Below are positions 4,484 to 39,425 of a stretch of 64,000 nucleotides of DNA, piece by piece (positions within the stretch are counted from its first letter, which is position 1; each line of letters starts with the position of its first letter). The position numbers and the translations under genes are program-made. A model generated the notes under the pieces. The model did no database searches, was not told the origin of the DNA, and saw only the letters and a list, made by a program, of their open reading frames with translations. Source of the DNA: Basidiobolus meristosporus CBS 931.73 (Eukaryota > Fungi > Basidiobolomycota); assembly GCA_002104905.1 (NCBI GenBank), contig MCFE01000319.1:1-64000 (forward strand), read 5' to 3'.

Positions 4484-5548
4484 GAAGAGAAGGATAGGTG
4501 AAAACCTCTGGTCAATCGTGGAGTAGTTAAGGAAGGTGAAGGACTAGCGTTAAACCTTGAGAGAAAGGCAATCGCTGGAAATAACAATACAGTTATATAG
4601 TCGCTTTTGAACGAGGTCGGCGTACTAACGTGCCAAGCTAATCCCATTCTTTCTGCATATGATGCACGTTCGGCTGCTTGCACGAGATATGACACCCTTG
4701 AAATTGTACAGCAATACAATTAAACATGTGAGTTGGATCGCCACTCAAAACTAGTATCTAGCACGCTGGCCCCGAATCATGTACATGCTTTTGAAAAATA
4801 TGATGTGGATGATGATGGCTTCATGCTCAGGGTGTAATGGACCATCTTTGGCCGTCAGAGCAATTTATTTTCAGCATTTATTGTAACCGTAATAGTGACC
4901 GAACGCAGAGCCCTGTGCTCTGGAAACGGTGCTGGCTTGACGAGCGATAATCGGTGCATTAGTGATTTATTGCGAGCTGGCCAACCTTTATATTCCGCCT
5001 CGTCGTAGATATTCACCGGGTTCAGTATAGTTGCATTTATGTGGATTTTATTAACAGGTCGAAGGTAACGAAACGTATAAATTGATGTTGATAATCTGGC
5101 TTTGCCCTCTACCAAAAACGTGCATCACCCACTGCACCTCTATGTGAAAAATGGTCATAGGTACATGATTCTTAAATGGCAATGGCGTTTACATTGGTCA
5201 AGATAAGGACTAGATTGAGGTTTTGGCAGGAATATTTGGGATGGCATATTTACTCTCAAGAACACCAGAACTCGGCATTAGGTGGTTCCAATCTCGTTAC
5301 AGAGTTGACGATCCTAAACACATATCTGGACCCATCTCGATAAGTGTGTAGTGGCCAGGCAGGCTGTCGTCAGATGGTAGCAGACAAAATTCAAAACTTG
5401 GACTTTATTGAACATATGATACAAGAGACATTAGGTGACCACAGGAAATCGAGACTCACGAAGGTTTGGAGAAGGCGGAAAAGTCAACTTTCGGCATATT
5501 AGCAAATAAGACCGAAGCTCAATCTAATGGGAAGCTATTGACAGTGGA

Positions 5549-15509: not shown

Positions 15510-17886
15510 TCAGAGGATACTATCCAAAAATGTACCCTCAACGTCTTGCTTATTGATGTCATAATCAATGTCTTCTATGAATGCATTAATATTACTAACA
15601 TCAGCCAAACTTAAATCTTCAATATTCTCCTCGACTCTATAATCTTCGGATTGGCTGCGGTTTGGTTTGCTCTTGGCGGAGCGGCGAGGATTCGCCGAAT
15701 CGTCCAATGCAGTGTGACTCTTGAGCTGCTTTGACTGAAGTCCTAGTATCTGGTTGAGTTGATGGCCAACACCAGAAAAAAAGCTTTTGCTGGTAGGATG
15801 TAGGCAACGAGGGGCAATCCCAATATTTGCAACATAGTTGTCACGGGGCTTCAGGCTGGCGGCTCTGGTGCGGATAAACTTATGCAGCCTTGTAGAGACC
15901 TGATCAGGATTGAAGACTGCAATGTGTGGTGGTAATTGTGCGGGAAAGTAGCTTGGCAAATCATAATCCAGAAAAGGGCCCAGTTTCTGCTGCAAAGAGC
16001 AAGTAGCAGCCAGAGCACGTGCTCTTTGAAGAGGAATCCAGGTTCCAAAGAGTGGACTCTCTTGGCGACGGATGCGCATTCTTCGTATCTCCAAGCTCAA
16101 CACTATCGCCTGTTCTTTCTCACTCTCCATCCCACCGGCAGTCAGCAAAGTGGTTGCATTCACATAACCAGAGTCATAGCGACGAAGTAATCGATAGGTG
16201 TTGCTGAAACCCTCAGCAGGGCCGACAGTAATTACATAAAAAGGGAGCGATTCCACCATGGTAATGAAGATCTGAGGAGAGAGGTGGAACATAGATGGGA
16301 TGAGCGTGTTCGGGTTGTATTCGCTGCTGTGAGCAGCTCGACCTTTGCTCTTTGGCACTCGAGCACCGGCCTTCGGGGGATTGATGGTGGCCTGTGGCTG
16401 AAAAAGTTTCTCCGCAGTCAACCTCGCTAGACTCTCCTTCCGTTCGTCCAAGGTAAGATTGGAGTAGACCTTTTCATCCTCCTCGTCAAGGTACAAGAAA
16501 GATGATACTTGATCTTCAATACATGGAACCACATTTCCGTCGGTCTCTTCACTTGAAACTCTCTCCTGCAGCTTCACTTTAGAAAACGTGGAGTTGCATT
16601 TGGCTACATCCGAGGTGGTATTATCTCGGGGCTTCTTGACGCATTGGGTAACCGTTGTGTCCGATTTGGAAATATCATCCACACAAATTCCCACAAGTTT
16701 ATCCAATTCAGGGATCACTATGTCATCGGAGAGAAGGGTACTTGGCTTGGATTCCCCACGATCAGGGTGGGAGGCTGTCATACTGTGTGAGCTCAGAGTG
16801 TCCCAAGGATCTGCAAAGCTGTCTTCATACGTGGATGATTGACTGGTAAAAATACTTTCAAGCATGCTAGAATCTCTTCTAGGCGACGACTCCGGAGTGA
16901 GCAAAGGGGAGGTGGTGCTAGTTCCACTCTCGGTACTGCTATGCGACGAATCCGAGTGGAAATCGTGGTCACATAGTGGAACATACAGCTCATTGCCATG
17001 CTTGTACGCTGACGGTGAGGTCGCCTCGATATCCAATCGCACCATGTCCTCCGCGACAAACAGCTTGTCTATCCCGCCCTCACTATCAATAGACTCGACC
17101 AAGGACTCGAATTCCAAATCAGAGTGGTCATCGTTTGATGCATCACTATCGTACATCTCGCTGGAGCCTTTGGAAGCTTTATCGCGTGAAGAGGCTTCGT
17201 ATGAAATGGGAACAATGGTGTCAAACCCAAAGGTGTCAGGACACTCATCAAAGCCCTCCATTGTAAACGACTGTGCATCATCGGAAAGCAAATCGTCAAG
17301 CGGTAGGGAAGAGATCCTCTCCTCCCGCGAACAGGCCTTTAGCTTCTTGCGCGGGGCATCTGCAACCAGAGACGATCTCTTGGTAGACAGCGGAGGGTGA
17401 GATGCACGGCGCAGAGAATATCTAGAACCGTCTGGCGTCTCGTGGACCTGAATCTTCAACAAAGGCATGGTGACCGAATAGCATTCTTGATCCCCGTTGA
17501 AGTATTTGCTCAAGCATCCAGAAACGGCAATGCATATGCTGGTTTCACTAGATTCATGATTGAATGTTAGCACGAATCATCGTAAAAATACTTAATGGAT
17601 ATCAACCAAAAACCAAACGATCGCTCAAACCAGAAGCCATGTTTACAACAAGTGTACAATGAAGTGCTTACCAGAGCGTAGCAAGCTTGTATTTTACAAT
17701 ACAATCCGCTATTTCCCGGGAACAACTTGGCCGATTCTTTAATAGGACCAGTGCTTTCAAAATAGCAGTGAAGAGGGCATCTTCATGGCCGAAGTTTCCA
17801 CGGAATCCTGAGGGGGATTTGTTGATATGAGGGAGCTGGCCTAGCTCGGAGGAATGGGCCAAACCTTGAAGTGCTAGCTCAGGCAT
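15510..17886 (-). CDS. Putative transcription regulator: N-terminal winged-helix (GDS1/HARE-HTH-like) + acidic Ser-rich region + KilA-N/APSES-like domain
   Basis: An upstream exon encodes EDALFTAILKALVLLKNRPSCSREIADCIVKYKLATL and splices (GT..GCTAAC..TAG) into ORF 15510..17573. That ORF contains LLRRYDSGYVNATTLLTAGG...GTWIPLQRARALA (KilA-N/APSES pattern). The start codon (MPELALQG at 17886) is uncertain. Confidence 0.75.
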
Positions 17887-20800
17887 GAACGAGGAAAGGT
17901 AGCATGCAATATGTGGAGATACGGACGAATGAACTAGTGTGCAATCCTGTTGCACAGATTCTGAAGTAGCGGAGTGAAGGGAGAATGTGTATGGATGCTA
18001 TTAAGCAGATGCCCAACCAAAGTGTCAGTTGAAAAGCAAGAAACAGAAGATAAGCAAACAGGCCATCGCGCCAACCCGCCATTATTTATTCAATGTCCCT
18101 TTGTTGGGAAATTTTGGTTTTACCAATAAAAGTTAAGTAATCTTAATTGGAAGTTAGAGTACAGGTGGCCGAGGACCAAAAGGATCTTATTTGATCCAAG
18201 TATAGAGATGTTCATTGGCTTTCACGAGCGATCATATCATTGGAGTATCTGGTGCATTTTCCGACCCTCACTTGGAAAAGGATCCAAATGGAAATGCGAT
18301 GGCGGTTTATGGGGGGATTGTAAGAACAGGTATGATTAATATGACCTCAATCTTCGATAATTTCCATCACTTCCAGATTACAATCGTTTACCACATTTGC
18401 ACCGGTTTCACTCCATTGAATAATTAAAAAGTCCATCAGTGGAAACGGGGAAATGATATCCAAATACCTACACAACCTTTCCAGCACTGAGTTTCGATTG
18501 CAATTTCGGAAAGATTTGGCCGAAACCACCCTATTAGAACGTCAAAATCCACTTGAGGTTGAGAAAATGCACGAGGACCCATCTGCGGCACTGTACTCCG
18601 AAAACCCGCTGTGCTTTTCCTTTACCGTCCATGCACACAAAAAGAACAATCATATCTTGCGCATCTCCTGATCCCTGTAAGATTTATCTCATTGCTTGAT
18701 CCATCGGTAGTTGACCAATGCTGCCCCACACCAGGTGATACCAGCTAGTCTTTTTTTCAGATTACCCCCATGCCATTGGCCAGCCGTAGTAATATAGAGT
18801 TGCGGCTATAGCAATATATTTTCCCCAGATCGCAGATCGAGGGAATCTTAGCTAGACTGTTATTTAACTCAATCTACATGAAACTTGCGGAGATCATCGT
18901 AAGGTAGGTATGGGAGGTGGGATACCCTCCATGAGCACCATTGGTAGTGTTTAGGAGGTAGAGTCCAATCAGTAGCCTGAATGATGCCGCGGCTCAATTG
19001 TTTGAGGAAAATGGACAAGTAGCATGGAAGGTGGGCTCCGAGCCAACAGATCATCTATGTGACATAGCACCGAGCAGAGGTTGATTTCCAAAATTTGCTC
19101 AGCTTGAGTAACGTTTTACTTGCCAAAACACTCGAGATGGCTCTCGGACAAGCAAACCATCGTTGGCGGTGTATTTGGTTTTCACCATCTGGTTGTACGA
19201 GAGTGGGATTATTGGGACCACATTGCCCCGAGAACACACGCACACTTAGAACACCCACCTTCGACTCCGATACGATCAATTCGTGCCCAACATAATAGGC
19301 ACAGGCAACCAACGCACCTCTTGTTTTGATTGATCCGAACCCACCCATCTTATTGACGGAGCCAATTTTGTCAAAGCACCATTCGGCTATCATAAATAGT
19401 AAGTATAAATCACCCCACCAACGAGGTGTTGGGTACCCAAGCCAGCCAATCAAAGGCCAACCATTATCGGAACCACTACTTCGTTCTCAGGAAAAATAAG
19501 TCCATCAGTTATTCGTGTTCCAAAGAGCTCTCCTGGAGAGGAGGGCCAGGCTGCTACGACAGGTACTCATGCAGTACCTTTCAAGTCAGCAGTACAGTCA
19601 CCACACTGTACCTTCATATCCATACCTGTAGTGAAGGGATGTGTGTTCAGCCGGTATTTAGGCATGATTGCAAAGCATAGCGCACTCTGCAACAAATCGG
19701 ATGAATAAGGGATGACAAGCAACCAAGGGATCATTGATAAAACAATTATGTGGAGGATGTTCCGCTTTCTGGTTAACAAAACATCTGGTCTTGCATTATC
19801 CTTGACAATTCTGAAGGCAAGCCTAAGCACCAAAATTGTCCATTAGTGAATGTGCAGTAGCACACAGTAAAGGGCACTTCTAGGCACGAATCGATGCTAC
19901 ATGATAAATGAGTATTCTGTTACATTCTACAGCTCAAGTCAAGTGTTAAACCGGTTTTCCCATCACTGATTTTTGGTTAAAGTGAACTTGTAAACAAATA
20001 TACTCAAACCAGTTAGTGTGTTACTATGCATACCATCCAAAAGGGCGGTTTCGTGTCTACATCCATAATGGTCTGTTTTTTTCATTGCGCATGTACCCAA
20101 AATGGCACCTCTAATTCCATTTGACCTGCTGGTAATACGGAGAATTATATGTGGTAAAATAGGATTCTTAACCTGGAGTGAAGCCGCAGCAACGAGAAAT
20201 GAATGGGATGAATGCACATACCGCAGTCAGTGAAACTCTAGAAAAGGAAATTGACAATTAATATTTGAAATGAGCTCTCCACTCTTATGCTTGTTTGAGG
20301 CTGCTTCTCAATCGCTATTCGGTGGAATACCTTCCCCGCTAAAACTAAAAACGCATAGGAATATATTGATGGTAATGTGAGCACACGATGATTGGGTGCT
20401 GATGAGTTATTTATTGAGCTCGCTCTTCTAGGAAAATCGCCATTCCCAATTAATATCTGAGCATAGTGATGAGGACTCGACGTCTTACTACGTCATTACG
20501 GTTAATGGGCCATGGATATATGTCTTATTTGTTGCGGTTAGATCTCGGTAGTTTCCGTGGAACTCGGTCCAAATTTGCACCAGCCCAGTTTATATATATG
20601 TCCACTAACATACGCAACATTTCAAGAATGAGGCTATTCAGGATTATTTTATGACTGAGGGCAGGTAATCTATTGGTGATATGGCTTTTCTGATTTTCCG
20701 TCATTGGCTTCTTGTCTGTTACAGTTTAAGATATTGGACGTATCAGGGTACATGGGATACCAGAATCTTCGGCGGGCGACTCACGTAATCACATTTCAAA

Positions 20801-21669
20801 TCAAGCTCAGATGGCTGTCATGGTTTTCGAAATAGCATTAGATATAGCAACGCCAGACTAAAAAGTGATGTATCACTGTCACTCAACAAAGCGAGCTTCA
20901 CGAGGGCTGGTGGCCAGGTGGCTATTTGCAAGTTACCAGATTGAAAACAAAGCATGTTGTGATGATCAAGAAAGTTTCACAGATGCAAGGCACTTGTATC
21001 CAGGTCTTGTATTGTGCTCATAAGATCATTTGCTACTCAATCACGCTGGCTACCTGTACACAACATTCTTCTGTCTGGATCATGTTTCACCTCAAGCCAG
21101 TTTCCAAATGATTGTGAGTGTGAGACTGAATGTGGGATAGCCATGATAATAGGCACAACCGAGAAGGATATTAGAGCCACTCCCCACAATTATTTAAAAG
21201 CCGGCTGTAGGGTTATCAACGTATTACTATCTCAGGCCAATCCTGAGTTGTGTGTTCTATTGAAGCAAATCACAAGTGGTAGTAGATTAACGCAGCTGAA
21301 AGTACATATTCACTTAGTAAGGTATTGTAATGAATGTTGGAACATGGCTATCTCGGTCATTTGCTAAGGATGCCAAGTGAGATTCGTTAGCTAATCCGGG
21401 TTTTGTAGGATTTGCAAGGTGGTTGATTGAAACTCACCGTTTACAAAGCAGTCTGTCATACTGAAGTTATTAGATCTAAACTAAACTTGATAATGATTTA
21501 TTTTACCAAGCTCAAATAGACTTGGAAATCACTATACATTGCCTCGCGTTATACGTGGTTGGCGATTTAATAACGCAGTAAAGAAATGTATATGACATGC
21601 ACTGGGAGGTTTTGATGAAGCGAGGATACATATATACAGTGAATATCTGTGGCAATCATAAATGGTTGC

Positions 21670-22483
21670 TTATTTCTCCTCAGAGGGTTGTTGATACAGG
21701 TTTTTCATTGCTTCCATAACCATGGCGTTACATAGTTTCGCATATGGGTTTTCCCTGACAGCTGCATCACGAGCGATAGTATTTCCATAATGTGCGCCTT
21801 TTTCGAAATCAAGTCTAGCTCCTTCTTGGTCACCTTTCGCTTTCTTGATGATAGCACGTTGGGTGTATGCCTATTTTAAGCACCTTTAGCTATATATTCT
21901 ACAAAGGAATGTTGCTATACCTACTTGTTTCAGTACAGATGAATCTCCGTTTGCTGTTTCGATGGCTTTCTCCAGATCTTCTAAGGCACCAGAGGTGTCC
22001 TGAGTCAATCGTCTCGCTTGTGCTCTATGAAATTTACAACGGTCAGTCACTGCTAACGTTTAAAATGAGATCGTAGGCTTACCTATTGTTATACGCAGAA
22101 GAATACTGTGGGTTTTCGTCGAGAATCTCACTCAGCTTCTTGATAGCTTCATCTAAATTTCCATTTTCAGCAAACTTAACTGCTTCGACTTCCATTTGCT
22201 TCAGCTTAGAGAGAAGCTCAGCGGGAATGTTGTCTATGGTATATTAGAATCGGCGACCAGTAAAAAAAACAATACGAACTTACCAGTGTATGAACCCTCT
22301 TTGGCAGTGGCAGCTGCTTCGGGGTTGAATGGGACACCCTCTACATACATTGTTGCTGTGGTTGGTATATTTCTCTAAATTCTCAAGGAAAATTGCTATA
22401 CCTGGATTGAAGACTCGGTCGAGAACTTGTCTATCGTGCTCGGAGATTTGGTCGATATCGTTCAAAGTAGGCTTTTTGATCAT
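21670..22483 (-). CDS. TTC36: Tetratricopeptide repeat protein 36 homolog, 5 exons
   Basis: Spliced translation: MIKKPTLNDIDQISEHDRQVLDRVFNP...EVEAVKFAENGNLDEAIKKLSEILDENPQYSSAYNNR/AQARRL...ALEDLEKAI.../AYTQRAII...ARLDFEKGAHYGN...NPYAKLCNAMV. The VL..IFNP and NPYA.LCN.M signatures are characteristic of TTC36. Confidence 0.85.
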
Positions 22484-22779
22484 TGTATGGTCAGATGCAG
22501 GAAGATGACTATGCGTTGGTCATGAAGGAAACGTATAGCCAGTTTTATACTCACACAGATATGCCTCTTATTGGATATGTGTCTGTACAAATCGTCACTC
22601 CTGATATGTTTTACCCACGGTATGGTGTACAGTCAGTCACAAGATCTATGGATTTCTAGGGTTGTTCCCCAAATAAGATTCTTTTTCACATATGCTAAAA
22701 AGTATGGGTTAGGCAACTGCCAAAGTTTTAAACGATAATTCATGCTTACTGTTGTCAAGAGCATATAAAATTGACCTAG

Positions 22780-24030
22780 TTTGGTCATGCAGTGTACTGA
22801 CCTTCTGGTAACTACAAGAATGGAATGCCATTCAAGTTAGGAGGTAACTGCTTGATGTTGTGTTTTTGATGCAGATAAATATATGCAAACTCAGGTATCT
22901 ATTGAAGCTAAAGTCAACATGAGATATATTCTTGTTTGACAATATTTATCTTCATATCTAGGCAAAATCCCCTGGTGTTATACCAAACAGTATCACCTAC
23001 AAGAGACATCCAGATATATCTAAATATGCATTAGAGATGTAGTTAGCAAATTGGAGTCCAGACAACTGGTAGTATTGCTCATACTGGCTAGATTGATCTG
23101 AATGGATACCTCGATGAGTGTAGATTGAAGATATGAAATACTATAGCTAAAAGACTTCAAGCAATGCTAAATTGTAGTGGATTATAAACATCAAATAAAC
23201 TTCTTAATAAAAGAGTGTTCCAAGCAAAATATTTTAGAAACTCTCAATATGAAAATTTGGTTGTGTCGAGATGGAGAAGCATGATATAATATTCATATTT
23301 ACATTCATGGTGCTTACTCTTTAGTCTAGAGCAGTGGCTTATCTAGATGAAACACCTAGTAGTCATTACTGAATCGAGCTTGTCGGATCTAAGAAGTATT
23401 TGAACTAGAGAGTGAGATTGGAATATTTCTCCAATACTCAATTGATCCGTAGCTAGTCAAGGGGCCATAATTTACCCAGAGGCTTTTATTCCATGTCGAT
23501 CTTGGCAGACTCTTTGGATCCTCCTTCACACGACGAGATGAATATGCAAGTGATTTAGCCATCCGTATCAAGTCGCTATACCAAAAAAGCACATTAAGCC
23601 CATGCTAGTCATATGACTCATCAAGCATTTCTTTTTAGCCTCAGATGAGCAATGTTATTTTCGCACACCAAACAATCGAACAACGTGGTGATCTATTCAG
23701 ATCTAGTGGCTGATATATGATGCCCACTCAGCAAAATGTACCATTGCATCAAACAGTCACTAATCAGTATCAAATACTTGAGAGAGACTTTTAACATATA
23801 AAAGCTCCTCTGAAATATATCACTCAAGCGAGTGATAGATATCTATTTGATGGTTTTTGACAGATCCGGGAGGTTTTTAGTGTCGAAATTGTGCAGAGCG
23901 GATCGGAAGAGGTAATCCCTTTCTGTGTACCATCAATGTACCGACACCAGCAAATGAAGTGGGATACTTCTGCTAAAATTATCAATTTCCCGGCGATTCC
24001 ATCTAATCCGGGCCCTTTGTGAGCCATTAC
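22780..24030 (-). mobile_element. Degenerate non-LTR retrotransposon (LINE) RT relic
   Basis: Minus strand has KGPGLDGI...QKPSNRYLSLA (cf. KAPGPDGI...NYRPISL), then HIFNL, LL*.DTV (cf. LLYADDT) and MKINIVKQ (cf. L.IN..K) in the expected order. Many stops and frameshifts. Only 3 CpG in 22621-23340. Confidence 0.5.
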
Positions 24031-24408
24031 AAGGAGTACAGTCACCTCAAACCTAGGGAACGAAGTATATCTTCGGATATATACTTATCCACTTCGGGGT
24101 GAAAACCAGATTTTGAGTTCGTGTTTATTACCGTTGGATACAACTGTGCTGCTACTGCTGTTCTATATACTAGTCAAATATGCTAAAAATCATAATAGTC
24201 TGGTGTGCTATCGATTATGGTTTTTCCAAATGAGGAATACATCCAGCACTAACCTAACCTGCTCTTATTGTCCCTCGCATTGGCTATTTCTCTCACGATA
24301 ACCGATAACCAAATATTCAACAACCCATACCCAACTCCATGCTAACATCCGACAGTGACAAAAAATAAATTCAACAGCGGCAATAACGATGACTTGGCTC
24401 TCGATAGC

Positions 24409-25888
24409 ATTGTCTTCATCAATACCATCAGTATCCGGATCAACCTCGTCCCTACCTTGCTGCCATCATCACCATCATCGTCATCACTGCCATCACCTAC
24501 TGCATTGCCTGAATTCCCCTTCTTGGCAAGTGCACCAGGTTCACACCTCATTCGTGGACTAGTGATACCATATCCGTGGGTCATACAAGATAATGTATGA
24601 GCCATGAATCACCCATTTTGGTAACAAGGGGTCTATATCCTTGATCACACTCATGCTACCAAACTCACCCTCACCCTTACCCTCACTATTGCCATTGCCA
24701 TTGCCATTGCCATTGCCATTGCCACTACCCTACCCACATCCACCCGTAATCATACGCCTATCCATGCTCCATGCCCCCGTATCCTTCTTCCACACCCACA
24801 CCCACTCACACAAGCATAAATATGAACCCGTACATCAGCCCAATCTGCCCACTAAACGGCCCGCAATTGGACCCAGCTTGGGGAGGAGGGGGGTGGGAGA
24901 GGTGTAGTCTCACAGGGAATGCAGTGCAATGGGATGGGATGCGAGTGCGAGTGCGAGTGCAGATGCGGAAGCGAGTATGAATGCGAGAGTAAATCCATAC
25001 CCATATCGGCCCAATATATCCGGGACCGACTAGCTCAGGGATCCATATGGATCGAAGGCTGGGATACCACATTGCCAATCCAGAAGTGGTAAGATTGATG
25101 GGTAAGATCATCGAGAGCCATCAAAGACCATCGAGACCATCGAGACCTCGACCTCGACCTCGTGAATCTGCCAACTCTAAACCAGTCTAGCCATATATTA
25201 TGGTCCAAGGGTGAGGGGAGGGGAGGGGAGGGTGATTGAGGGCGAGGATTTGTTGGCCAGAACATTCCACGCCACCACTCCCCAGCTTCATCGCCATCAC
25301 CATCGTCAATGCCAACGCGACATCACGATCATCATCGGCACAACGTGCATTCTTGCTGACACAAGGCCAGTCATCGGTCCTTCTATTCCGCCTTCCGTTC
25401 CCCATGCCAACCATCACTGGTGCATCTGCATTTGTGCACAGTATGGAAGCCAGGCTGATGGGGAGGAGGGGGGAGAATGAACTGCGGCAAAAAGCGCACA
25501 CAATGAACGAGGCTGATGGTGGTCATAGTGGGAATACGTGATCCATTGAAATCCCCGGCTATTCTCTATAGCTGATTAGCTGGCTAGTGACCCTGGCCAG
25601 TGACTGGTGAGTGATGAGTGATGGGATGCGGGAGACAGGACAAGGAAGGAGAGTGGATGAGTTGGGTGGACGGGCAGCAGGCAGTAGGCAGCGGTCAGAG
25701 TGGGAGGCCAATCGAGGCCAAGTGTAGATTTGTCCGACTGGATGCCGATCAAAATTAAATGCCGGTTGCTCAAAATTAGATTTGACTCGATCAATACATA
25801 AACCATGCTGGCCTCTTTCCCTCAACAAACCAAGATTTTCTCAATGCCACAGACACGCGCAACCGTCAAACAATCATGTCTACATTGG
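24409..25888 (+). repeat. Left arm of about 1.47-kb inverted repeat (IR-L, 1480 bp)
   Basis: Reverse complement of 32628..34087. Differences I could spot: about 6 transitions, a 1-nt indel, a 9-nt CGAGACCAT unit indel and a 12-nt length difference in the TTGCCA array. Confidence 0.95.
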
Positions 25889-27402
25889 AACCCGATGCTA
25901 CACTGGAAATTGGCACCCCGAGCGTGGTACTGGGACTTGGAGATTTAGCTTGAGGCTCCAATCAGTATATTATCAAAAGAATACACCAACGGCTGATTAA
26001 TACTTATCACATGCTAAGGATGGAATGAATCAATTACCAATCTCTAGCATATGTACTGAGAATAATTCTTCACCTTTTTTACTTTTTAATTTCAAAATGG
26101 CCGAAATGCAATTCATCTAAGCGTAATTTGAGCTGAATACTGGCTGCCATAATAATCCATCAGAATGAATTGGATATAGCCGTGAGAAGCGAGACAAAGG
26201 AGGTTAGTCTCAGGCAAGTTGACTAAGCATTCAATACAATCCAGACTATTGTATAGCCGTTAATAGCATTAATGAATTTGGCAGCCTGCCAACTTATAAA
26301 AGCGCCAGGCCACTGATTTTGGGGTAGGGGAACTGATTAATAGAGGCATACGTATTTCTGACTTCTATAACAAATATATAACTCTACAGAATAATGGTGA
26401 ATTCCAAACATACGATGAGAATTGTAGCCATGACTCGCTCATAGTACATGCGTATATCTATATTCATGGGTATGCTGACTGGTACGTGTCACGAAACCGA
26501 AGCCAAATGGTTGATTCTGATCAATATCGAATGAGGTACATTTTTTTCATATGCTCTTAGACTGGCACATCCAAGAGTGATAAGCTCAAGTATTATTCAA
26601 GGATTGTCGATAAACAAGGTAACGCCAGTGGTCGACATTTAACAAGAATGTTCTTGATCAATGTGTGCTAATTCAGTGAGATATCATTTGCATCTACAAG
26701 CCAAAAGAATAGCTGGTTGAATATTCAGCTATAGTGCGCTCTAAAAGCCACCACATTCACTCGTGAAACATTTGTGCAACTTGTGAGAATTCTATCGATC
26801 CTATTGCTAGACATTATCGTTGTTTTTGGATTTGTTGGATCCCTTTGAGCACTGATCGTACCCAGAATATATCGATCTTAATATGTTTTTTCTGAGACAC
26901 ACAGTATTCGGCCCTTTCCCACTTTAGAATTATTACCTGAATGCCTAATGTGGAATGTCCACCAGAGTTAACCGCTTTTTCACTCTAGTAAGACTGGTTA
27001 TTATTTAGATAGTATACCAGTGAGTAATCGTTGGTGGATAATCTATACCTACTCCTCATCATTTCTACCATTTCTAATTTGGAGTTGTTGGGAATCTAAA
27101 CCTCCCCATATCTGCCTTAGGTATATGTTGTTTTTAAAGTCCGACAATCTTACAATCTTTTATAACATCTTTCTACATTATTTTCGCCCAACACATCTCT
27201 CTTACTCTTCTCAGCATATTTTTTCTTTCCCAGTCTCTTGTGCAAAATCAGTTTCATAGAATTTACCCAATACAGGTGCACTACCCCAAGTTAGCGAACA
27301 AAACCTTTGCAATACTTCTAAAGTCCCTTGACTTACCTGAAGTATATGTTAAAAATATCACCCCCACCCAATTCTTCCGAAGAGCATAGCTTTTCAAGCA
27401 TC

Positions 27403-30400
27403 ATGACATATCTGAAGTTCAATACAAACGAAGTAGAAAGTTATGTGCCTGAATTAAAACCCCCAGGGATAACCATTTCGGAGCTTGTCAAGCGTAAAGA
27501 TTGGTCCCAAACTTCATTGGGTCCAAGAGAAAGTTGGCCTGAGTATTTGAAATGGACCTTGAATCTTGTCCTTCATTCTTCTTTTCCTATGGCCATATAT
27601 TATGGGGAAGATGACATTCTCCTATACAACCAAGGTTGGTCCACCATTCTCGGCACCAAACACCCCGAAGGTAAGGACACCCTGTTTGTGATATGTTTCA
27701 GTAAACTGTTTTGTAACCATTTTATGACAGCTTTTGGCGAGCCTGGTCACAAGGTCTGGTCTGAAATATGGCACATCATGAAGCCATTTATAGACCAAGC
27801 CCGCGATACAGGAGAGGGGGTTTTCATTGAGAACCACCTCTTCCTATTGCAACGTGCTGGCTATGAAGAGGAGACGTGGTTTAGATTTTCTATATCGCCT
27901 CTTTTCGATCCAGACGGCAAGATCGTTGGAGTTTTAAACACAACCTTAGAGCAAACCCAAGAGTATATCGGACAAAGACGACTCAAAACCTTGACTGAGG
28001 TAGGTAAACTAACTCGTGGCGCGCAAAGCCATCAGGAGGCATGTTATTCGGTGATTTCGGCGTTAAAAGAAAATAACGCCGATGCTCCTTGGTCGATGAT
28101 ATACTACCCTTACCAGTCTAATGGGACAACAACATTGGAGTTGGTGGCTAGTAGCTTTGGCGAGGTTGATGGTGACAGCCGAGTGAATCCATGCGTACCG
28201 GCATATTTAGAAACAATTCATCATGATGATGTCTGTCCAGATTTTTGGCCGGTCTCTAAAGTTGCCACTCAAGGTGAAGCTGAGCTGATCAGACTGCCGG
28301 ATGGCACCAGGGCAGTATTTCTGCCATTGTTTATTTCTAGAGCGTCAGAAAAACGCTTATCGGCAGTCATGGTTTGTGGACTGCACCATTTACGACTTCT
28401 GGACTGCGCATATAAGGATTTCTTTTCTCATCTCGCTGCGTATGTTACAGCAGCAATCAGAACTGGCATTACGTGCGAGGAGGAGAAGAAGCAAATAGAA
28501 GATTTAGCGGAGTTGAATCATTCCAAAACTGCATTCTTCCAAAACGTCTCTCATGAACTTCGGACTCCTTTGACTTTGATCCTAAGCCCATTGGAGCAAT
28601 CCTTGCTTGACCCGACAATACCTGCCAAAGTGCGAAAGAACATGCTAATGGTTCAAAGAAATGCCAGACGTCTGTTGAAACTGGTCAATACGCTTCTAGA
28701 ATTCAGCAAGATAGAGGCCGGAAAAAATACTGCTGCTTTTCAAATAACAGATATCTCCAAATTTACCCGAGAATTACTTGCTTCATTCGAATCAACTGCA
28801 GTTACTCTGGGTATTGAATTTGTGATCGATATTCAAGAATTGCACACCGAGTTTCCTGTGTATATCGACCAAGATATGTGGGAGAAAATTCTTCTGAACC
28901 TAGTTTCTAACGCTTTCAAATTCACCAAAAACGGTACCGTGTCGGTTAGCCTACGACCCAGCAATATGGAACTACCTGACAGGCAAACAGTCGAAGCTGT
29001 GCATCTATCAGTAAAAGATACTGGCATAGGTATTTCTCCAGAAGATATGAAGCATCTATTCAATCGCTTTTATTGCGTAAGAAGCGTTGAGGCTCGTTCC
29101 TATGAGGGTACCGGTATTGGACTTGCACTTGTCCAGGAGCTAGTCCATTTTCATTCGGGAATCATTAACGTTGAGTCAAAGGAGCTGGTTGGCACTACGT
29201 TTAATGTCATAATTCCAACCGGGAAGGCACACATCCCTCCGGAGTTCATTATGAGTAACATAACTAAATTGCCAGAGTCCAGAATCAAGAGAACCGCCGA
29301 GCTTTTTATAGACGAAATGCAGCAATGGTGTTGCGTACCCGCAGAAGCACAACTACAAGCAGACCACGGCAGAAAGCCGCTTACCTCTCCCTCTGGCAGT
29401 AGTAAATCTCTAGCTGTTACGCCTGATTCCAGCTATCAGAAACCGTGCATACTTCTAGCAGATGACAACACCGACATGCGAAACTACATATATACTCTAC
29501 TTGAAGACGAATTCGAAGTTCTATTAGCGACAAATGGGCTGGAGGCTTTGGAGATAATCAACTTCCGTATACCGGATTTGGTCCTTTCAGGTACGAGTAG
29601 CTGAAGCTTGCCGTCTGATTGCTGATGTACTAACAGGTTGTGTAGATGTCATGATGCCACATCTGGATGGATTAGGGTTATTGAAGGCCTTTAGAGAAAA
29701 CCCCAAAACTGCAACTATTCCCATCATCTTCTTGTCAGCACGAGCAGGGCCTGAGGCCTCTGCTGAGGGCGTAGAGGCTGGGGCTGATGACTATCTGGTT
29801 AAGCCATTCTCAGCTCAGGAATTACTGGCGCGCGTTCGCACCAACATCAAATTAAGCCGTCTGAGGCATGAGCTTTTGGTACAACAGAAGATGCAAACTG
29901 AATGCAAGCAGATGGTGCTCAACATTTCTGGGAAGATTCGGGCTAGATTTGGCCTGGAATGGATTTTGAATGAAACAGCCGATGAGGTTAGAAAGGCGCT
30001 GGATGCCGACGGCTTGCTGATTTGTCATAATCTGGCAAATCAGAGTGAGTTCATAGTCAAAGCTGAGGCACTTCACAAGGATTCCATATTCCAGTCTTTT
30101 CTAAATCACTCTTTCCACTATAACCCCGAGATGTTGACGGATATATTTCGACACTTCAACGAGGTTGGTAGTGGTGGGATCGATGTGGCCAGCTTGTTTC
30201 CACAATCATTTAGCCAGGGATGCGACTTCACCGGAATTCCGATCGTTTTGGAGGATGAAATCTGGGGTTGGATCTTAGCACGCCAAAGGCCTGAATTAGA
30301 ATGGAATGAGTTCCAATGTACTTTACTTGAGCAAATCGCGACCCAAGTTGGATTAGCCATATCCCACGATAAGTTAGTTAGCGAGAAGATTAACCAGGAA

Positions 30401-32246
30401 ATTCAGATCGAAGCGGTGAATGCCGCAAACAGAGCGAAAAGTATTATCCTTGCAAATACTTCACATGGTAACGTGGGTTTTTAGTACGCTGTCTATATTA
30501 GGATCAATAGTGGTTTACACAAGGCTCATTTTTACAGAAATCCGCACGCCCCTGAACGCTATCATAGGTTTGGTTAGTGCATTTGAAGACACGCAGCTAA
30601 CGTTGGAGCAGAGAGAAATGCTGAAGATCATGCTTACCGCCAGTGATGTTCTCCTGCGAGTGGTGAATGATATCCTTGATATGGCGAAGTTGGAAGCCGG
30701 GAAGATTAAGCTCAAGCCCATGGACTTCAGTCTTCCAGACCTGCTGAAATCCACGATGGATGTATTCTCCAAGTATCAGCAGGAGAAGGACATCAAGTTA
30801 TCATGCATCTGCGAGCCGAATGTACCGAAGGCAGTAATTGGGGATTCTGCTCGCGTTCAGCAAGTATTGATGAACCTGCTGAGCAACTCATTCAAATTCA
30901 CAGACCAAGGACAAATCTCAATTCACGTAGAGGTCGTGGAGCCCCAAACCGACACCGACGTCACGGACACCAGCAAGATCACTCTTCGTTTTAGAGTATC
31001 TGACACTGGCATTGGTATCGCGAAAGAAGCCATTAATAAGCACCTATTCCGCTCTTTCCATCAAATTGACGGCTCGATGACCCGAAAATACGAGGGAGTG
31101 GGATTGGGGTTGGCCATTTGCAAAGAGTTAGTTGAAATCGGCAACGGCCAGATTGGCGTGGAGTCTACTCTGGGCGAGGGGTCCACTTTCTGGTTTACCT
31201 GGCATTTCTGTAACTCCGATCCTAATTGTGTCATTGAGAGCAAATATCTGGATATGATACACACGCAAAAATGCTTGACGATATGTGACGGTGATGCTGA
31301 AGACAGCTCCATCACCATGCTTATCCAAGATCTGGTCCGCTCTCATCTTCAGGCCAAAACGTTTAGTCAGGGCCTTGAGTACTTAAAGCAGACCCAGTCA
31401 ACATCTGATCCTATACAGTGCGTGTTTTTGACGGCAACTGAGAGTGAATCTGCGAACTCCCTGTCAGACAGAGTGGCCAAGCTAAAGGCGTTTGATTCCA
31501 AGCTACATATCCTGCTGATATTTCCTTTGTCATCGCTCCATCTAGCACAGGCAGTTGTTAGCCAATTCGATGACACCGTGGTGGGGATATCGATGCCAGT
31601 GACCAAATTCAAGTTGACCTTCGCACTGCTCAACTTCTACCAGGAGAAGTTGGAGAAAACCATCAAAATCAAGGAGTCTGAGAAGCCTCAAACTCCGGGA
31701 GATTCACCTACTTCGCTAACTTCACCCGATCCCAACACGCTAGCTTTCTTCCCGCCCACCACCAACAAAGATGCACGCAAAGCGCAGAAGAGTGCCAAAA
31801 GACTGTCCAAATCCGGAAGAAAAGAGGCCAGCGCAAGCGAGGGCACAGATCATTTGAACGATAAGTATATGATCCTGGTCGTTGAGGATAATCCGGTCAA
31901 TATGGAAGTGGTACATAGACAGTTAAAGCGCCTAGGATACCGCTCAACGGGAGCCAAAAATGGCGCCGAGGCTGTTGATATTTTGAAGCAAGCCCCAATG
32001 GATCGCTTTTCACTAGTACTCATGGATTGTGCGATGCCTATAAAAGATGGATTTGAAGCAACGCGAGACGTTCGACAACTGCCCGATACAGCGATCCGTG
32101 ACATTCCGATTGTTGCGTTAAGTGCCAGCTGTATTGAAAGTACGCAGAAAGAGTGTATATCCTCTGGTATGAACGATTTCTTGGCGAAGCCCGTGAAACT
32201 TGGAGAACTGAATCAAATGCTTCAGAAATGGCTCACCAAACACTAA
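27403..32246 (+). CDS. Dual hybrid histidine kinase: PAS-like - GAF - HisKA - HATPase - REC - GAF - HisKA - HATPase - pseudo-REC - REC; introns 27671-27730, 29591-29645, 30468-30537
   Basis: H-box 1 FFQNVSHELRTPL; N/G boxes ILLNLVSNAFKFT, VKDTGIGIS, GTGIGLALV; REC1 ILLADDN...LVLSDVMMP...DDYLVKPF. H-box 2 ANTSHEIRTPLN; QVLMNLLSNSFKFT, VSDTGIGI, GVGLGLAIC; REC2 LVVEDNPVN...LVLMDCAMP...DFLAKPV. The start ATG (27403) is approximate. Confidence 0.93.
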
Positions 32247-32627
32247 CTTGCATACTAGCCCATCCATTCTTTCCCATACACTAATTTAATCCGAATTCTA
32301 TGTGTATACATCAAATACATATCCTTCGTGCCAAACCCCATCCTCGTTGCCTTCATGTAATCATCCCACCGCGTTCGCAAGCATTGTTCCACTCCGCCCA
32401 ACCTTCCATCGTTCCCATTTTGAGCATTTGTGTTTTTTTTTGGATTGTAGATTCACCGCAAGTAAATATCACACATTCAAAGCTGTTCTTGACCTAGGCT
32501 GTTTCCTAAATAAACCGACCATTCGATCACACAGCTCCCGCAGGGCTTAGTTGCCTCCGTCCCGAGGCACGTGGAGTCGAACATCATATCCGAGGTGGCA
32601 TCAAATCTCCACCCTACGCTCAGGGTG

Positions 32628-34087
32628 CCAATGTAGGCATGATTGTTTGACGGTTGCGCGTGTCTGTGGCATTGAGAAAATCTTGGTTTGTTGAGGGAAA
32701 GAGGCCAGCATGGTTTATGTATTGATCGAGTCAAATCTAATTTTGAGCAACCGGCATTTAATTTTGATCGGCATCCAGTCGGACAAATCTACACTTGGCC
32801 TCGATTGGCCTCCCACTCTGACCGCTGCCTACTGCCTGCTGCCCGTCCACCCAACTCATCCACTCTCCTTCCTTGTCCTGTCTCCCGCATCCCATCACTC
32901 ATCACTCACCAGTCACTGGCCAGGGTCACTAGCCAGCTAATCAGCTATAGAGAATAGCCGGGGATTTCAATGGATCACGTATTCCCACTATGACCACCAT
33001 CAGCCTCGTTCATTGTGTGCGCTTTTTGCCGCAGTTCATTCTCCCCCCTCCTCCCCATCAGCCTGGCTTCCATACTGTGCACAAATGCAGATGCACCAGT
33101 GATGGTTGGCATGGGGAACGGAAGGCGGAATAGAAGGACCGATGACTGGCCTTGTGTCAGCAAGAATGCACGTTGTGCCGATGATGATCGTGATGTCGCG
33201 TTGGCATTGACGATGGTGATGGCGATGAAGCTGGGGAGTGGTGGCGTGGAATGTTCTGGCCAACAAATCCTCGCCCTCAATCACCCTCCCCTCCCCTCCC
33301 CTCACCCTTGGACCATAATATATGGCTAGACTGGTTTAGAGTTGGCAGATTCACGAGGTCGAGGTCGAGGTCTCGATGGTCTTTGATGGCTCTCGATGAT
33401 CTTACCCATTAATCTTACCACTTCTGGATTGGCAATGTGGTATCCCAGCCTTCGATCCATATGGATCCCTGAGCTAGTCGGTCCCGGATATATTGGGCCG
33501 ATATGGGTATGGATTTACTCTCGCATTCATACTCGCTTCCGCATCTGCACTCGCACTCGCACTCGCATCCCATCCCATTGCACTGCATTCCCTGTGAGAC
33601 TACACCTCTCCCACCCCCCTCCTCCCCAAGCTGGGCCCAATTGCGGGCCGTTTAGTGGGCAGATTGGGCTGATGTACGGGTTCATATTTATGCTTGTGTG
33701 AGTGGGTGTGGGTGTGGAAGAAGGATACGGGGGCATGGAGCATGGATAGGCGTATGATTACGGGTGGATGTGGGTAGGGTAATGGTAATGGTAATGGCAA
33801 TGGCAATAGTGAGGGTAAGGGTGAGGGTGAGTTTGGTAGCATGAGTGTGATCAAGGATATAGACCCCTTGTTACCAAAATGAGTGATTCATGGCTCATAG
33901 CATTATCTTGTATGACCCACAGATATGGTATCACTAGTCCACGAATGAGGTGTGAACCTGGTGCACTTGCCAAGAAGGGGAATTCAGGCAATGCAGTAGG
34001 TGATGGCAGTGATGACGATGATGGTGATGATGGCAGCAAGGTAGGGACGAGGTTGATCCGGATACTGATGGTATTGATGAAGACAAT
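32628..34087 (-). repeat. Right arm of about 1.47-kb inverted repeat (IR-R, 1460 bp)
   Basis: Near-identical reverse complement of 24409..25888. The ORF track shows the same small ORFs mirrored on opposite strands in both arms. Confidence 0.95.
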
Positions 34088-34810
34088 AGTAACCTCCATG
34101 ATTAGGCACTCGGTAGCATTGAGCGCCAGTACCAAGTGGAGTTTTGGAAGGTCATACTCCATTTGAAGCGGTTAATGGACACCATGTACCACTCGCTCTA
34201 GGATACCCCCGCAGTAGAGACATCAATGAATCTACGATCCTTGCCGAGATATGATCTGAAACGTGGAGCTTATTGCATGTCCCAAATATGCTAAACAACG
34301 GTAAGATTGTTTAAATTGTCTGACCAACTTGGTCAAGCATTTTGAATGATTAGCATATACTGTTCCACATTTGATTCATCGGGCTCACGTCTAGTACAGA
34401 CCATCCCATGTGAATGTCCGCCCTGATCTATAAAACATGGTGACCACATCCTGTGTAATATCCTACCCCTGGATAATCATCAGGCGTAGCGGGGCAGCAA
34501 TGCTGGAGCATTTGCCAGTGGGCAACCGCCAAACTTCGGCATATCCTAATTAAGGACCATCGTTGGTTTTGGAATTACTTTATTGACTAGAAAAAAAGGA
34601 ATATCAAATCTATACAACTTTCCCTTACGCAGGAATTATCCCGGTCAGGTTCCAAGGGTATGATCTCAGCCCATTTGCAACATCCCACTGACCCTTACCT
34701 CAGTATGAGATGTCGCAGAGCACCCCTAGTTGTTCATGTATGTCTGATACAACCTCAAAAAACAATGATCATATAATGAAATAAGCAAACCATCCCCCTC
34801 TATGCTTGAA

Positions 34811-38216: not shown

Positions 38217-39425
38217 ATGACTCCTGGCACAATCGGTATAGTCATTGCCGTGGCATTATATGACCTCTTCATCTTTGTAACAGTTGGTCTTCTGATCCAT
38301 TTTCGGAAGGACCCATATTTCGCCCACCGTAACGTTGTGATAACCTCAATAATAGGCATTACGTCTGCGATATTGCTACCTGTAGTCTCTTTCTTGAATT
38401 TAATCCCAACCTGGCTATTTCTCTACTTGATCAATATCTGTTTCCCACTTGTCTTCATCTGCGTCACTGGGAAGGTTCTTCAGCTCACGTTCTTGTATTA
38501 TTCGAGTCAAGCCAAACTAAATCATGGTGAGGACTACGCCTCAAGTCACAACTCGCAAACTAGTTTGTCCAGACCCGAGACGAATGTTTTCTATAGATAC
38601 CATCGTTACTTCAATAATCGTGTTTGGTTTGTCTGGTGCGGCGTGGAGCTTACTATTTACATCATCTTGACCTCGATCATCCTTTTCTGCACACTCCCCC
38701 TCCCTTCCAACTTTGCGTCCATCCCCAGTCTTGCCTTGATGCCCATATTCATTAGTTACTCTCTGCACCTTTTGATACAATGGCCAATCTTTATGTGGTA
38801 TTTACGATCCGTCAACGATGCATTCCACATACGTTTTGGGCTCTCCGTTGTGGAAATAGTGGAGGTCATTAGTCTAATTGGTCTGATCCTCCGCTCTACA
38901 CTCAGCTACATCAAGGTTCATTGGGAAGCTTATGCGATTTATTGCGTTGTGCGAGTTGTTCTGATCCACATTGCAGTTGTGGTATTTCCCCTGTGGCGTC
39001 GCCCTCGATCTCCTCAAGCTACCGAAAAGTTCCTCCCTGTCTACGATCTTACCTCGTTGCTGTCAATTATGGAAGATCCGATACAATACGAAGACTTCAA
39101 AAGGTTTTCGCTTCGAATCTTTGCCGTCGAGAACACGTTGTTTTATCGCAGATGCATGGATCTCAAAGCCAATTCTCAAATGCCGGTGATTGTCAACAAA
39201 AAGGAGGTTGTCAGGATATATGATATGTTCATCCGACCCAACAGCGATATGGAGGTTAATATCACAGAGGACGTTCAAGCTGAGGTGACTCTTGCACTTC
39301 AAAGGCCGCTCAGCGAAGGATATCCTATCGATATGTTTGACAGGGCAATGGAGCAAGTCCTCGATATCATGTATCATGATATCTTTCCCAGATATCTTGC
39401 CCACAAAAATCATTTAAACGTTTAG
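38217..39425 (+). CDS. 7-transmembrane + RGS domain protein (GprK/AtRGS1-like architecture), intronless 402 aa
   Basis: Seven hydrophobic segments in the first 260 or so residues. C-terminal RGS pattern FKRFSLRIFAVENTLFY...IYDMFIRPNSDMEVNIT...MFDRAMEQVLDIMYHDIFPRYL. Confidence 0.88.
   Translation: MTPGTIGIVIAVALYDLFIFVTVGLLIHFRKDPYFAHRNVVITSIIGITSAILLPVVSFLNLIPTWLFLYLINICFPLVFICVTGKVLQLTFLYYSSQAKLNHGEDYASSHNSQTSLSRPETNVFYRYHRYFNNRVWFVWCGVELTIYIILTSIILFCTLPLPSNFASIPSLALMPIFISYSLHLLIQWPIFMWYLRSVNDAFHIRFGLSVVEIVEVISLIGLILRSTLSYIKVHWEAYAIYCVVRVVLIHIAVVVFPLWRRPRSPQATEKFLPVYDLTSLLSIMEDPIQYEDFKRFSLRIFAVENTLFYRRCMDLKANSQMPVIVNKKEVVRIYDMFIRPNSDMEVNITEDVQAEVTLALQRPLSEGYPIDMFDRAMEQVLDIMYHDIFPRYLAHKNHLNV

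Follow-up and report, generated by a model that had tools for sequence, protein, structure and literature searches.

An expressed histidine kinase gene of Basidiobolus meristosporus is enclosed by two near-identical, non-coding sequences in inverted orientation, and its orthologue in Basidiobolus ranarum also lies within an inverted repeat, which is described here for the first time. The locus as a whole looks like a small palindrome kept alike by conversion; it does not look like a transposon, and it is not a proven genetic switch. We favor, at a probability of about 0.55, the reading that the arms form an old, small chromosomal palindrome around a resident kinase and are homogenized by arm-to-arm gene conversion. 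The palindrome most likely originated before B. meristosporus and B. ranarum split. Our search of the literature found no paper on inverted repeats in Basidiobolus genomes.

Geometry and content of the arms

The inverted repeat was verified in the whole stretch of DNA that was analyzed (64 kb, hereafter the window), in which the arm occurs in two copies only. Its parts, and the differences between the arms, are as follows.

24409..25893, no strand: left arm (IR-L), 1485 nt, non-coding, 51.5% G+C
24688-24724: (ATTGCC)n microsatellite in IR-L
25105-25151: 9-nt repeat in IR-L
32623..34087, no strand: right arm (IR-R), 1465 nt, reverse complement of IR-L
25134..25878, partner 32638-33382: perfectly identical 745-nt block, read as a recent gene-conversion tract
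24575, 24613, 24703, 24709, 24871, 25097, 25879, 25889: substitutions between IR-L and IR-R
24595/33900: arm indel 1, 1 nt
24714-24725: arm indel 2, 12 nt, in the ATTGCC microsatellite
25125-25133: arm indel 3, 9 nt, in the AGACCATCG repeat

A sequence-only reading of this DNA had placed the inner arm ends at 25888 and 32628. The repeat it described is real, with those ends lying within 5 nt of ours (25893 and 32623), and its figure of about 99% identity outside microsatellites is matched by the 99.4% that we find at aligned sites (98% overall). The arms differ by a total of eight substitutions and three indels. The perfect 745-nt block adjoins a half that carries six of these substitutions and all three indels; by our own arithmetic, the chance of nine differences all missing the 745-nt half is ~0.002 (range, p ~0.002 to 0.01). 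The block fits one recent conversion tract, short of proof. Homology breaks off sharply at both arm ends, with a slightly fuzzy inner edge (two mismatches in the last 15 nt), and a decayed extension of homology past the arm ends was looked for and found to be absent.

The arms contain no open reading frame longer than 104 aa. Neither Pfam (for the open reading frames) nor Rfam nor a tRNA search gave a match, and no RNA contig lies over IR-R, where depth stays at zero between 32700 and 34500. On these results, we rejected a gene or RNA hidden within the arms. The arms do stand out in composition, with 51.5% G+C versus 38 to 39% in the left flank and the 5' region of the spacer and 45 to 46% in other adjacent non-coding DNA. 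The same is seen in B. ranarum, with 42 to 43% G+C in the arms versus 32 to 38% in adjacent non-coding DNA. An excess in both species is what GC-biased conversion would be expected to produce; alternatively, the high G+C content could stem from the sequence from which the arms arose.

Copy number and assembly

The genome of the source strain, B. meristosporus CBS 931.73, was assembled from PacBio reads, and arm depth was measured in Illumina contigs from two runs of that strain. Depth was 184 to 203 for the arm versus 97 to 112 for unique DNA, a ratio of ~1.7 to 2.0, contig depth not being a strict copy number. Because depth is about twice that of unique DNA, the arm is a two-copy sequence and not a dispersed repeat. 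The ratio of about 2 refutes, for near-identical copies, two insertions of a dispersed repeat, which that reading had kept as an option; old, diverged copies of the arm may exist. The finding of only two copies in the window, together with the depth, excludes a dispersed repeat. One X1 contig continues into other sequence at 34007 and could mark a third, partial copy of the arm. In runs X4 to X6, which bear the same species label, nothing at least 90% like the locus was found except a riboswitch.

All four arm junctions are covered by independent Illumina contigs, and both alleles of the arm microsatellite are present in them at depths of 78 and 94, about single copy each. The earlier argument against a collapsed assembly is strengthened by these junctions, alleles, and doubled depth. 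It is true that PacBio assemblies can hold inverted artefacts, whether from collapsed or chimeric assembly or from a palindrome left by a missed adapter, and this genome is a PacBio assembly. The Illumina contigs effectively refute such an origin. Moreover, a missed adapter would not yield a unique 6.7-kb spacer, and the same layout is found in an independent assembly of another species.

The enclosed kinase and its ancestral position

The spacer and the genes around the repeat are listed below.

25894..32622, plus strand: unique spacer, 6,729 nt, with the kinase gene, its 1.45-kb upstream region (38% G+C), and its 3' untranslated region
27346..32246, plus strand: coding sequence of the dual hybrid histidine kinase, ~1591 aa
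29589-29643 and 30467-30536: kinase introns (GT..AG), the splicing of both seen in RNA contigs
15510..17955, minus strand: GDS1-type winged-helix gene, left syntenic anchor common with the paralogous block L003
34811..36351, minus strand: SSF/DUR3-like transporter K493DRAFT_286769, convergent with the kinase; right neighbor, likewise in B. ranarum
38217..39425, plus strand: RGS-domain gene, right syntenic anchor common with the paralogous block L003

As had been proposed from the sequence, the 6.7-kb spacer holds the kinase gene and its upstream region, and we found nothing else in its 6,729 nt. Pfam matches in the three exon open reading frames give the domain order HisKA-HATPase-REC-GAF-HisKA-HATPase-REC, that is, two HisKA-HATPase-REC modules on one polypeptide, the arrangement of a dual hybrid histidine kinase. 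After splicing, the frame stays open over 1597 codons; we set the start codon by aligning the gene with its B. ranarum model. The gene is intact, spliced, and expressed; its RNA contig ends at 32520, placing the 3' end of the mRNA inside the spacer. The kinase and transporter genes converge, and IR-R takes up most of the gap between their 3' ends. An active gene is found on the right flank, and the left flank is a 6.5-kb stretch that is poor in open reading frames. This stretch had been taken for a decayed LINE, a description that we did not reproduce: 14 open reading frames (60 to 132 aa, 17.6 to 24.1 kb) gave no match to a reverse transcriptase or endonuclease.

An older duplicated block of the genome, GDS1-HK-RGS (L003), carries a paralogous kinase at the same place and in the same orientation without the repeat. 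The order and strands of the three genes (GDS1 minus, kinase plus, RGS plus) are identical in the two blocks, and no such arms flank the paralogous kinase. The orientation of the kinase in the assembly is therefore the ancestral one, collinear with both anchors. That the kinase keeps this place and orientation argues against both mobile cargo and the scar of a single inversion.

The orthologous locus of B. ranarum

In B. ranarum, transporter and kinase genes form the same convergent pair at the orthologous locus (L001), and there too an inverted repeat encloses the kinase.

4525-4720 / 11850-12043: B. ranarum inverted repeat, spacer 7,147 nt

The B. ranarum arms are 92% identical over a visible length of 186 to 196 nt, one arm ending at a contig end. 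Their placement resembles that in B. meristosporus: the repeat begins 454 nt past the kinase stop codon in B. ranarum versus 377 nt in B. meristosporus, and it lies upstream of the kinase start by 1.7 kb and 1.45 kb, respectively. A search for the remainder of the B. ranarum arm by way of the neighboring GDS1 gene gave a sole B. ranarum hit (L005), which belongs to the other paralogous block. A search of the protein collection, restricted by length, gave no further Basidiobolus orthologues of the kinase, and the other Basidiobolus DNA that we looked at, ~110 kb in all, held no other comparable inverted repeat.

The two species are far apart. Four-fold sites are 35 to 37% identical, for a Jukes-Cantor distance of ~1.4 to 1.5, and by this estimate neutral sites between them are saturated. 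Arms that are 92 to 99% alike within each genome cannot be aligned between the species: sensitive blastn, tblastn, and Smith-Waterman comparisons were all no better than controls, the best tblastn E value among 40 arm open reading frames being 0.002 before correction for the 40 queries. Because homology of the arms between species is not demonstrable, the case for shared ancestry is built on the matching positions and on how rarely such repeats occur. It is the shared architecture of the B. ranarum orthologue that leads us to an old, conversion-maintained palindrome as the best reading. It is also important to point out two observations that weigh against this reading: the visible part of the B. 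ranarum repeat is short and comes from one fragmented assembly, and non-genic arms would have to outlast ~0.7 substitutions per neutral site per lineage, which is a long time.

Alternative explanations

The repeats of the two species might instead be separate and fairly recent events, at 99% and 92% identity, in a genus that recurrently brackets gene-sized units with inverted duplications, with no long-term concerted evolution. Such duplications could arise, for example, by template switching during replication or by a staggered-break inversion followed by re-inversion. Staggered breaks are known to leave inverted duplications at the ends of inversions (Ranz 2007, PMC1885836), the arms of the two species have no detectable sequence in common, and persistence of a neutral repeat across so deep a split is demanding; with intergenic regions this short, similar boundaries could also recur by themselves. 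We nevertheless think this explanation unlikely, if a serious contender, as the same orthologous gene would have to be struck twice and the other Basidiobolus DNA examined (~110 kb) holds no such cassette. The staggered-break version needs two events, because the kinase has the orientation that it has in the paralogous block lacking the repeat, and the excess of G+C, seen in the arms of both species, is not what newly copied, ordinary intergenic DNA should show. A transposon has far less in its favor. Either the 9.7-kb unit would be a non-autonomous DNA transposon of the foldback or Pack type with a captured kinase, or each arm would be an inserted mobile repeat; long inverted termini with internal microsatellites do resemble foldback elements, the boundaries of homology are sharp, and the contig that leaves the arm at 34007 might represent a further copy. 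Yet depth fits two copies only, and target-site duplications are absent both at the outer ends and around either arm (the left flank ends ...CTCGATAGC and the right flank begins AGTAACCTCC..., with no direct repeat). Transposase, recombinase, and reverse-transcriptase domains are likewise absent from the arms, the spacer, and the left-flank open reading frames tested. Domain searches and flank comparison agree with the sequence-only reading that no transposase, recombinase, or outer target-site duplication is present, and they stand, with the two-copy arms and the collinear kinase, against its suggestion of a composite or mobile element carrying the kinase. Because the gene is collinear with GDS1 and RGS in the paralogous block, which has no such arms, and with the transporter in B. 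ranarum, the kinase is a resident and not cargo. We regard a mobile origin as highly improbable.

The geometry, kilobase-scale inverted repeats around a single regulatory gene, is also right for a regulated or stochastic switch of the MAT flip/flop type, in which flips at an appreciable rate would alter kinase expression through the neighborhood of the gene. An architecture kept in two species despite complete turnover of arm sequence would suit such a switch, as would the contrast between the 6.5-kb left flank and the active gene on the right. In structure, the locus offers recombination between inverted arms a textbook substrate; we see no sign of a programmed switch. Both the 1.45-kb upstream region and the 3' end of the mRNA are part of the spacer and travel with the gene, in keeping with the earlier caveat that the promoter probably inverts with it. 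In the window, no silencing region of a centromere or telomere was identified nearby, and there is no recombinase and no conserved site at the arm edges. The PacBio assembly gives a single orientation, which equals the ancestral one, the short-read Illumina contigs break at the 1.5-kb arms, and the analogous Saccharomyces repeats are stable on laboratory timescales. We therefore consider a switch very unlikely. A bolder reading is that the palindromic architecture is itself under selection, having been kept across a saturating split despite full turnover of the arms, and that Basidiobolus has a class of such cassettes around signaling or regulatory genes, flipping stochastically or acting as paired chromatin boundaries. 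This we hold to be a long shot, slightly less improbable than the switch. If it were true, the selected cassettes would be a eukaryotic, recombinase-free counterpart of the phase-variable invertons of bacteria.

How a conversion-maintained palindrome would work

Under the preferred reading, an old palindrome homogenized by conversion, the only two copies of a 1.5-kb non-coding sequence would form a palindrome with a spacer around an expressed kinase, and non-allelic homologous recombination between the arms would keep them alike within each genome. Non-crossover outcomes (gene conversion) would homogenize the arms; the perfect 745-nt block may be the most recent tract of conversion, and GC-biased conversion acting over a long time may have left the arms enriched in G+C. 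Where the outcome is a crossover, the 6.7-kb cassette with the kinase would be flipped. Since the spacer contains both the promoter region and the 3' end of the mRNA, a flip is expected to have little or no effect on expression, and because of this any polymorphism in orientation is expected to be a neutral by-product and not a programmed switch. What we show is the repeat, its two copies, the absence of coding or RNA features from the arms, the ancestral place and orientation of the kinase, and the matching layout in B. ranarum; we infer gene conversion, the common ancestry of the repeats in the two species, and the capacity for inversion.

If shared ancestry holds, this early-diverging fungus carries a palindrome, compact and non-genic, that has persisted while its own sequence turned over completely. 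The locus would then offer a clean natural case for rates of gene conversion, GC-biased conversion, and inversion, and would extend the measurement of such rates beyond sex chromosomes and yeasts. If, on the other hand, the repeats are independent, the locus points to a process, recurrent and so far unrecognized, by which genes come to be bracketed by inverted duplications. Either way, the transposon and dispersed-repeat readings are removed.

Comparison with known systems

One close likeness in layout is to the flip/flop repeats of Saccharomyces chromosome XIV, which are homogenized within species and whose conservation dates back at least 17 million years (Salzberg et al. 2022, PMC9731477). 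There, as here, a fungal inverted repeat flanks a unique segment; the B. meristosporus repeat has two long, high-identity inverted arms (1485 and 1465 nt, 99.4%) around its 6,729-nt spacer. The Saccharomyces arms are alike within a genome and diverged between species (PMC9731477), a pattern that the Basidiobolus arms, 99% and 92% identical within their genomes and unalignable between the two species compared, may share. The arms in Saccharomyces, 4 kb long, include a tRNA gene and sporulation genes that are expressed; 15 genes lie in the 24-kb spacer, which has been documented in both orientations (PMC9731477). Inversion by recombination between those arms is a by-product, and the architecture is conserved across species (PMC9731477). 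In contrast, the Basidiobolus arms are 1.5 kb, non-genic, and untranscribed, the spacer has one gene, and conservation is seen from two species.

In the MAT flip/flop system of Ogataea polymorpha (PMC5720833), a segment is similarly bounded by inverted repeats, and recombination inverts it. There, inversion is induced and brings one MAT locus of the two into centromeric repression (PMC5720833), so that the output of orientation is defined in Ogataea, whereas the Basidiobolus segment contains a single gene together with its promoter, and its promoter region and mRNA 3' end are both within the spacer instead of one end meeting silencing chromatin. Staggered-break inversions (Ranz et al. 2007, PMC1885836) also leave inverted duplications at segment ends without a transposon. 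That model predicts an inverted segment (PMC1885836), but the Basidiobolus kinase keeps the orientation of the repeat-free block. With foldback and Pack-type transposons the locus has in common long inverted termini, simple repeats inside them, and enclosed host-gene sequence; it differs in having two arm copies and a complete gene at its ancestral site, with the gene order of L003 and the kinase/SSF pair of B. ranarum, and in having neither target-site duplication nor transposase.

Finally, the locus resembles the palindromes of primate X and Y chromosomes (PMC3723533, PMC8981503). These have arm identities of ~99% or more through arm-to-arm conversion (the process that we infer in Basidiobolus), arms enriched in G+C by biased conversion, conservation across species, and a spacer between the arms. 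In primates, the arms range from 10 kb to 1 Mb on animal sex chromosomes and usually carry testis-expressed genes, whereas the Basidiobolus palindrome is fungal and kilobase scale, with non-genic arms and its gene in the spacer.

Inverted repeat and enclosed kinase gene

Comparison of the window sequence recovered the inverted repeat where a sequence-only reading had placed it, as two arms, the only copies in the 64-kb window, separated by a unique spacer of 6,729 nt.

Features of the window and of the B. ranarum orthologous locus (L001)
24409-25893: left arm, IR-L
32623-34087: right arm, IR-R
29589-29643 and 30467-30536: kinase introns, GT..AG
34603-34737, minus strand: TPP riboswitch RF00059, full-length, 60.1 bits (gathering score, 54.3)
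L001 3187-3321, plus strand: TPP riboswitch, 59.5 bits
7055-9091, minus strand: 678-aa ORF, 58-65% G+C, strong strand skew, degenerate tandem repeats

The exact difference list comprises six substitutions in the outer half of the arm (24575, 24613, 24703, 24709, 24871, and 25097), two more in its final 15 nt (25879 and 25889), and three indels. One of the indels is a single nucleotide (24595/33900); the other two, of 12 and 9 nt, fall in an ATTGCC microsatellite and a AGACCATCG repeat, respectively. The 745 nt from 25134 to 25878 are free of any difference. Similarity breaks off sharply at both arm ends with no decayed homology beyond, and we saw no target-site duplication at the outer ends or around either single arm.

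The arms contain no ORF longer than 104 aa, a Pfam search with six of the arm ORFs yielded nothing even at E = 1, neither an Rfam family nor a tRNA was matched, and RNA contig depth over 32700-34500 was zero. Their G+C content, 51.5%, is the highest in the window if the G+C-rich tandem-repeat ORF at 7-9 kb is set aside; adjoining noncoding DNA has 38-39% (left flank and 5' side of the spacer) or 45-46% (elsewhere).

The spacer holds three ORFs with the domain order HisKA-HATPase-REC, REC-GAF, and HisKA-HATPase-REC, and splicing at the two introns joins these into a single frame that is open for 1597 codons and, read from the ATG at 27346, encodes ~1591 aa. Because this frame is open and both introns are spliced in contigs from the RNA run X7, the kinase is intact and expressed. 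Its RNA contigs terminate at 32520, ~100 nt short of IR-R, and both its 3' end and its 1.45-kb upstream region lie within the spacer.

Outside Basidiobolus, the top matches to the N-terminal half of the kinase (sensor-HisKA-HATPase-REC; 27328-29604, plus strand) were hybrid kinases of cyanobacteria, myxobacteria, and Gemmatimonadota, with 35-40% identity, 92-96% query cover, and E values around 1e-145 to 1e-162. This module could be of bacterial origin, in a genus with known horizontal transfer (PMC7466969). Alternatively, the bacterial matches could arise because full-length fungal dual kinases were removed by a length filter. In the second HisKA region, a 38-nt contig (30600-30637) had a DNA depth of 362, ~3.4x unique, and also formed a separate RNA contig; it is probably an exact word common to several dual-kinase paralogues.

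Copy number of the arms

The source assembly was built from PacBio reads (PMC7466969, citing Mondo 2017). In Illumina contigs from two DNA runs of the source sample (X1 and X2), depth was 105-112 on the spacer, 97-100 on the right flank, and 184-203 on the arms (~1.7-2.0x unique). The microsatellite alleles appeared as two separate short contigs (depths of 78 and 94), and all four arm junctions were found. These independent data bear out the earlier view that the arms are not a collapsed assembly and leave an artefact a negligible prospect. As the arm depth is ~1.7-2.0x unique, the genome therefore has two near-identical arm copies, diverged copies aside and contig depth not being a strict copy number. 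The same depth rules out a dispersed family of near-identical repeats, and with it the suggestion of two insertions of such a repeat.

One X1 contig, absent from X2, matches the arm over its outer 80 nt and at 34007 passes into unrelated sequence, and depth at 33700-34099 is a little higher than over the remaining arm. This contig may come from a partial third copy of the arm tip, or it may be chimeric.

Ancestral position of the kinase

A paralogous block of the same genome (L003, MCFE01000386.1) carries GDS1 (minus), a dual kinase, RGS, and a small GTPase (all plus), collinear and on the same strands with the window genes at 15.5-18.0, 27.3-32.2, 38.2-39.4, and 42.6-43.2 kb, and has no inverted repeat. 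Because of this collinearity, the kinase is a resident gene that has kept its ancestral position and orientation, which counts against a cargo-carrying element. The proposal of a mobile or composite element carrying the kinase is rejected, and a transposon is very improbable. Inversion by staggered breaks is a source of inverted duplications at inversion ends (Ranz 2007, PMC1885836), but a single such scar would leave the kinase flipped, and its orientation is unchanged relative to L003.

The window differs from L003 in having gained the transporter, IR-R, and a long stretch poor in ORFs that includes IR-L. The GDS1-HK-RGS-GTPase block (window 15.5-43.2 kb) is an old segmental duplication that predates the B. 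meristosporus/B. ranarum split, since the L003 copy has its orthologue in B. ranarum, on contig L005; transporter, riboswitch, and inverted repeat were gained solely by the window copy.

A corresponding repeat in B. ranarum

What is new here is that the inverted-repeat architecture is conserved in a second species. In L001 (JASJQH010007446.1), orthologues of the transporter (88% aa identity) and kinase (77-82%) are convergent, as in the window, and the kinase is again flanked by an inverted repeat (4525-4720 and ~11850-12043, arms 92% identical, the second cut by the contig end). The repeat begins 454 nt after the kinase stop, versus 377 nt in B. meristosporus, and lies 1.7 kb upstream of the kinase start, versus 1.45 kb. 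The B. ranarum arms have 42-43% G+C, versus 32-38% for their surroundings. Elsewhere in the window there is no comparable repeat, nor is there one in L003 or at the loci of the transporter paralogues, L002 and L004 (~110 kb in total).

Following GDS1 toward the contig adjoining L001 led only to the other paralogous block. Three runs with the same species label (X4-X6) were too diverged to align with the locus. Among their contigs is one that ends ~473 nt past the riboswitch, near the expected outer end of the arm, which is only a hint.

Origin of the repeat

The simplest account is an old palindrome with spacer, shared by ancestry, whose arms are kept in concert by gene conversion, and we give this a probability of roughly 0.55. 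Arm-to-arm conversion would make the arms evolve together: identity between arms is 92-99% inside each genome, while four-fold degenerate sites, at just 35-37% identity across the two species, are saturated. The 745-nt perfect block beside a half with nine differences may be one recent conversion tract (p ~0.002-0.01), and long-term GC-biased conversion could account for the G+C excess. The main rival, an independent and more recent origin in each species by a recurrent process that makes inverted repeats, is unlikely but deserves weight, as the split is very deep and orthology of the arms cannot be shown; no alignment between the arms of the two species was obtainable, as expected for neutral DNA. 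Against it, two separate events would be needed at one gene, the kinase orientation is unchanged, and the arms are G+C outliers.

If the arm recombination ended in a crossover, the kinase cassette would be inverted. The sequence-only reading held that the promoter probably inverts with the gene, and the 1.45-kb upstream region indeed lies inside the spacer. Because the control regions travel with the gene, we expect flipping to have no regulatory consequence; invertibility is plausible, though unproven, solely as a side effect of recombination, and a true switch is improbable. The closest precedent for the kinase palindrome is the flip/flop region of Saccharomyces chromosome XIV. Its inverted repeats, 4 kb long, have persisted for at least 17 million years under continual homogenisation within species, and they cause recurrent re-inversion, which is stable on laboratory timescales (PMC9731477). 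Primate sex-chromosome palindromes behave similarly, with GC-biased conversion (PMC3723533, PMC8981503).

Other features of the window

The 6.5 kb left of IR-L (17956-24408) contain no ORF longer than 132 aa, and 14 of the ORFs in it lacked Pfam matches, so that the label of a decayed LINE given to this stretch was not confirmed. The 678-aa ORF, also without a Pfam match, has ~39 overlapping repeat copies and a 42-nt period at 8298-8572.

The TPP riboswitch lies 3' of the SSF/DUR3-like transporter's stop codon, at a distance of 75-210 nt, within the abundant mRNA of this gene; the RNA contig of the transcript ends at 34575. The usual site of fungal riboswitches is in 5' introns, and placement in the 3' UTR is plant- or alga-like. 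In yeasts, DUR31-type transporters are controlled by TPP riboswitches (PMC5997356). The element is absent from L002 and L004 and is kept in B. ranarum, with 88% identity over 162 nt versus ~75% for coding DNA.
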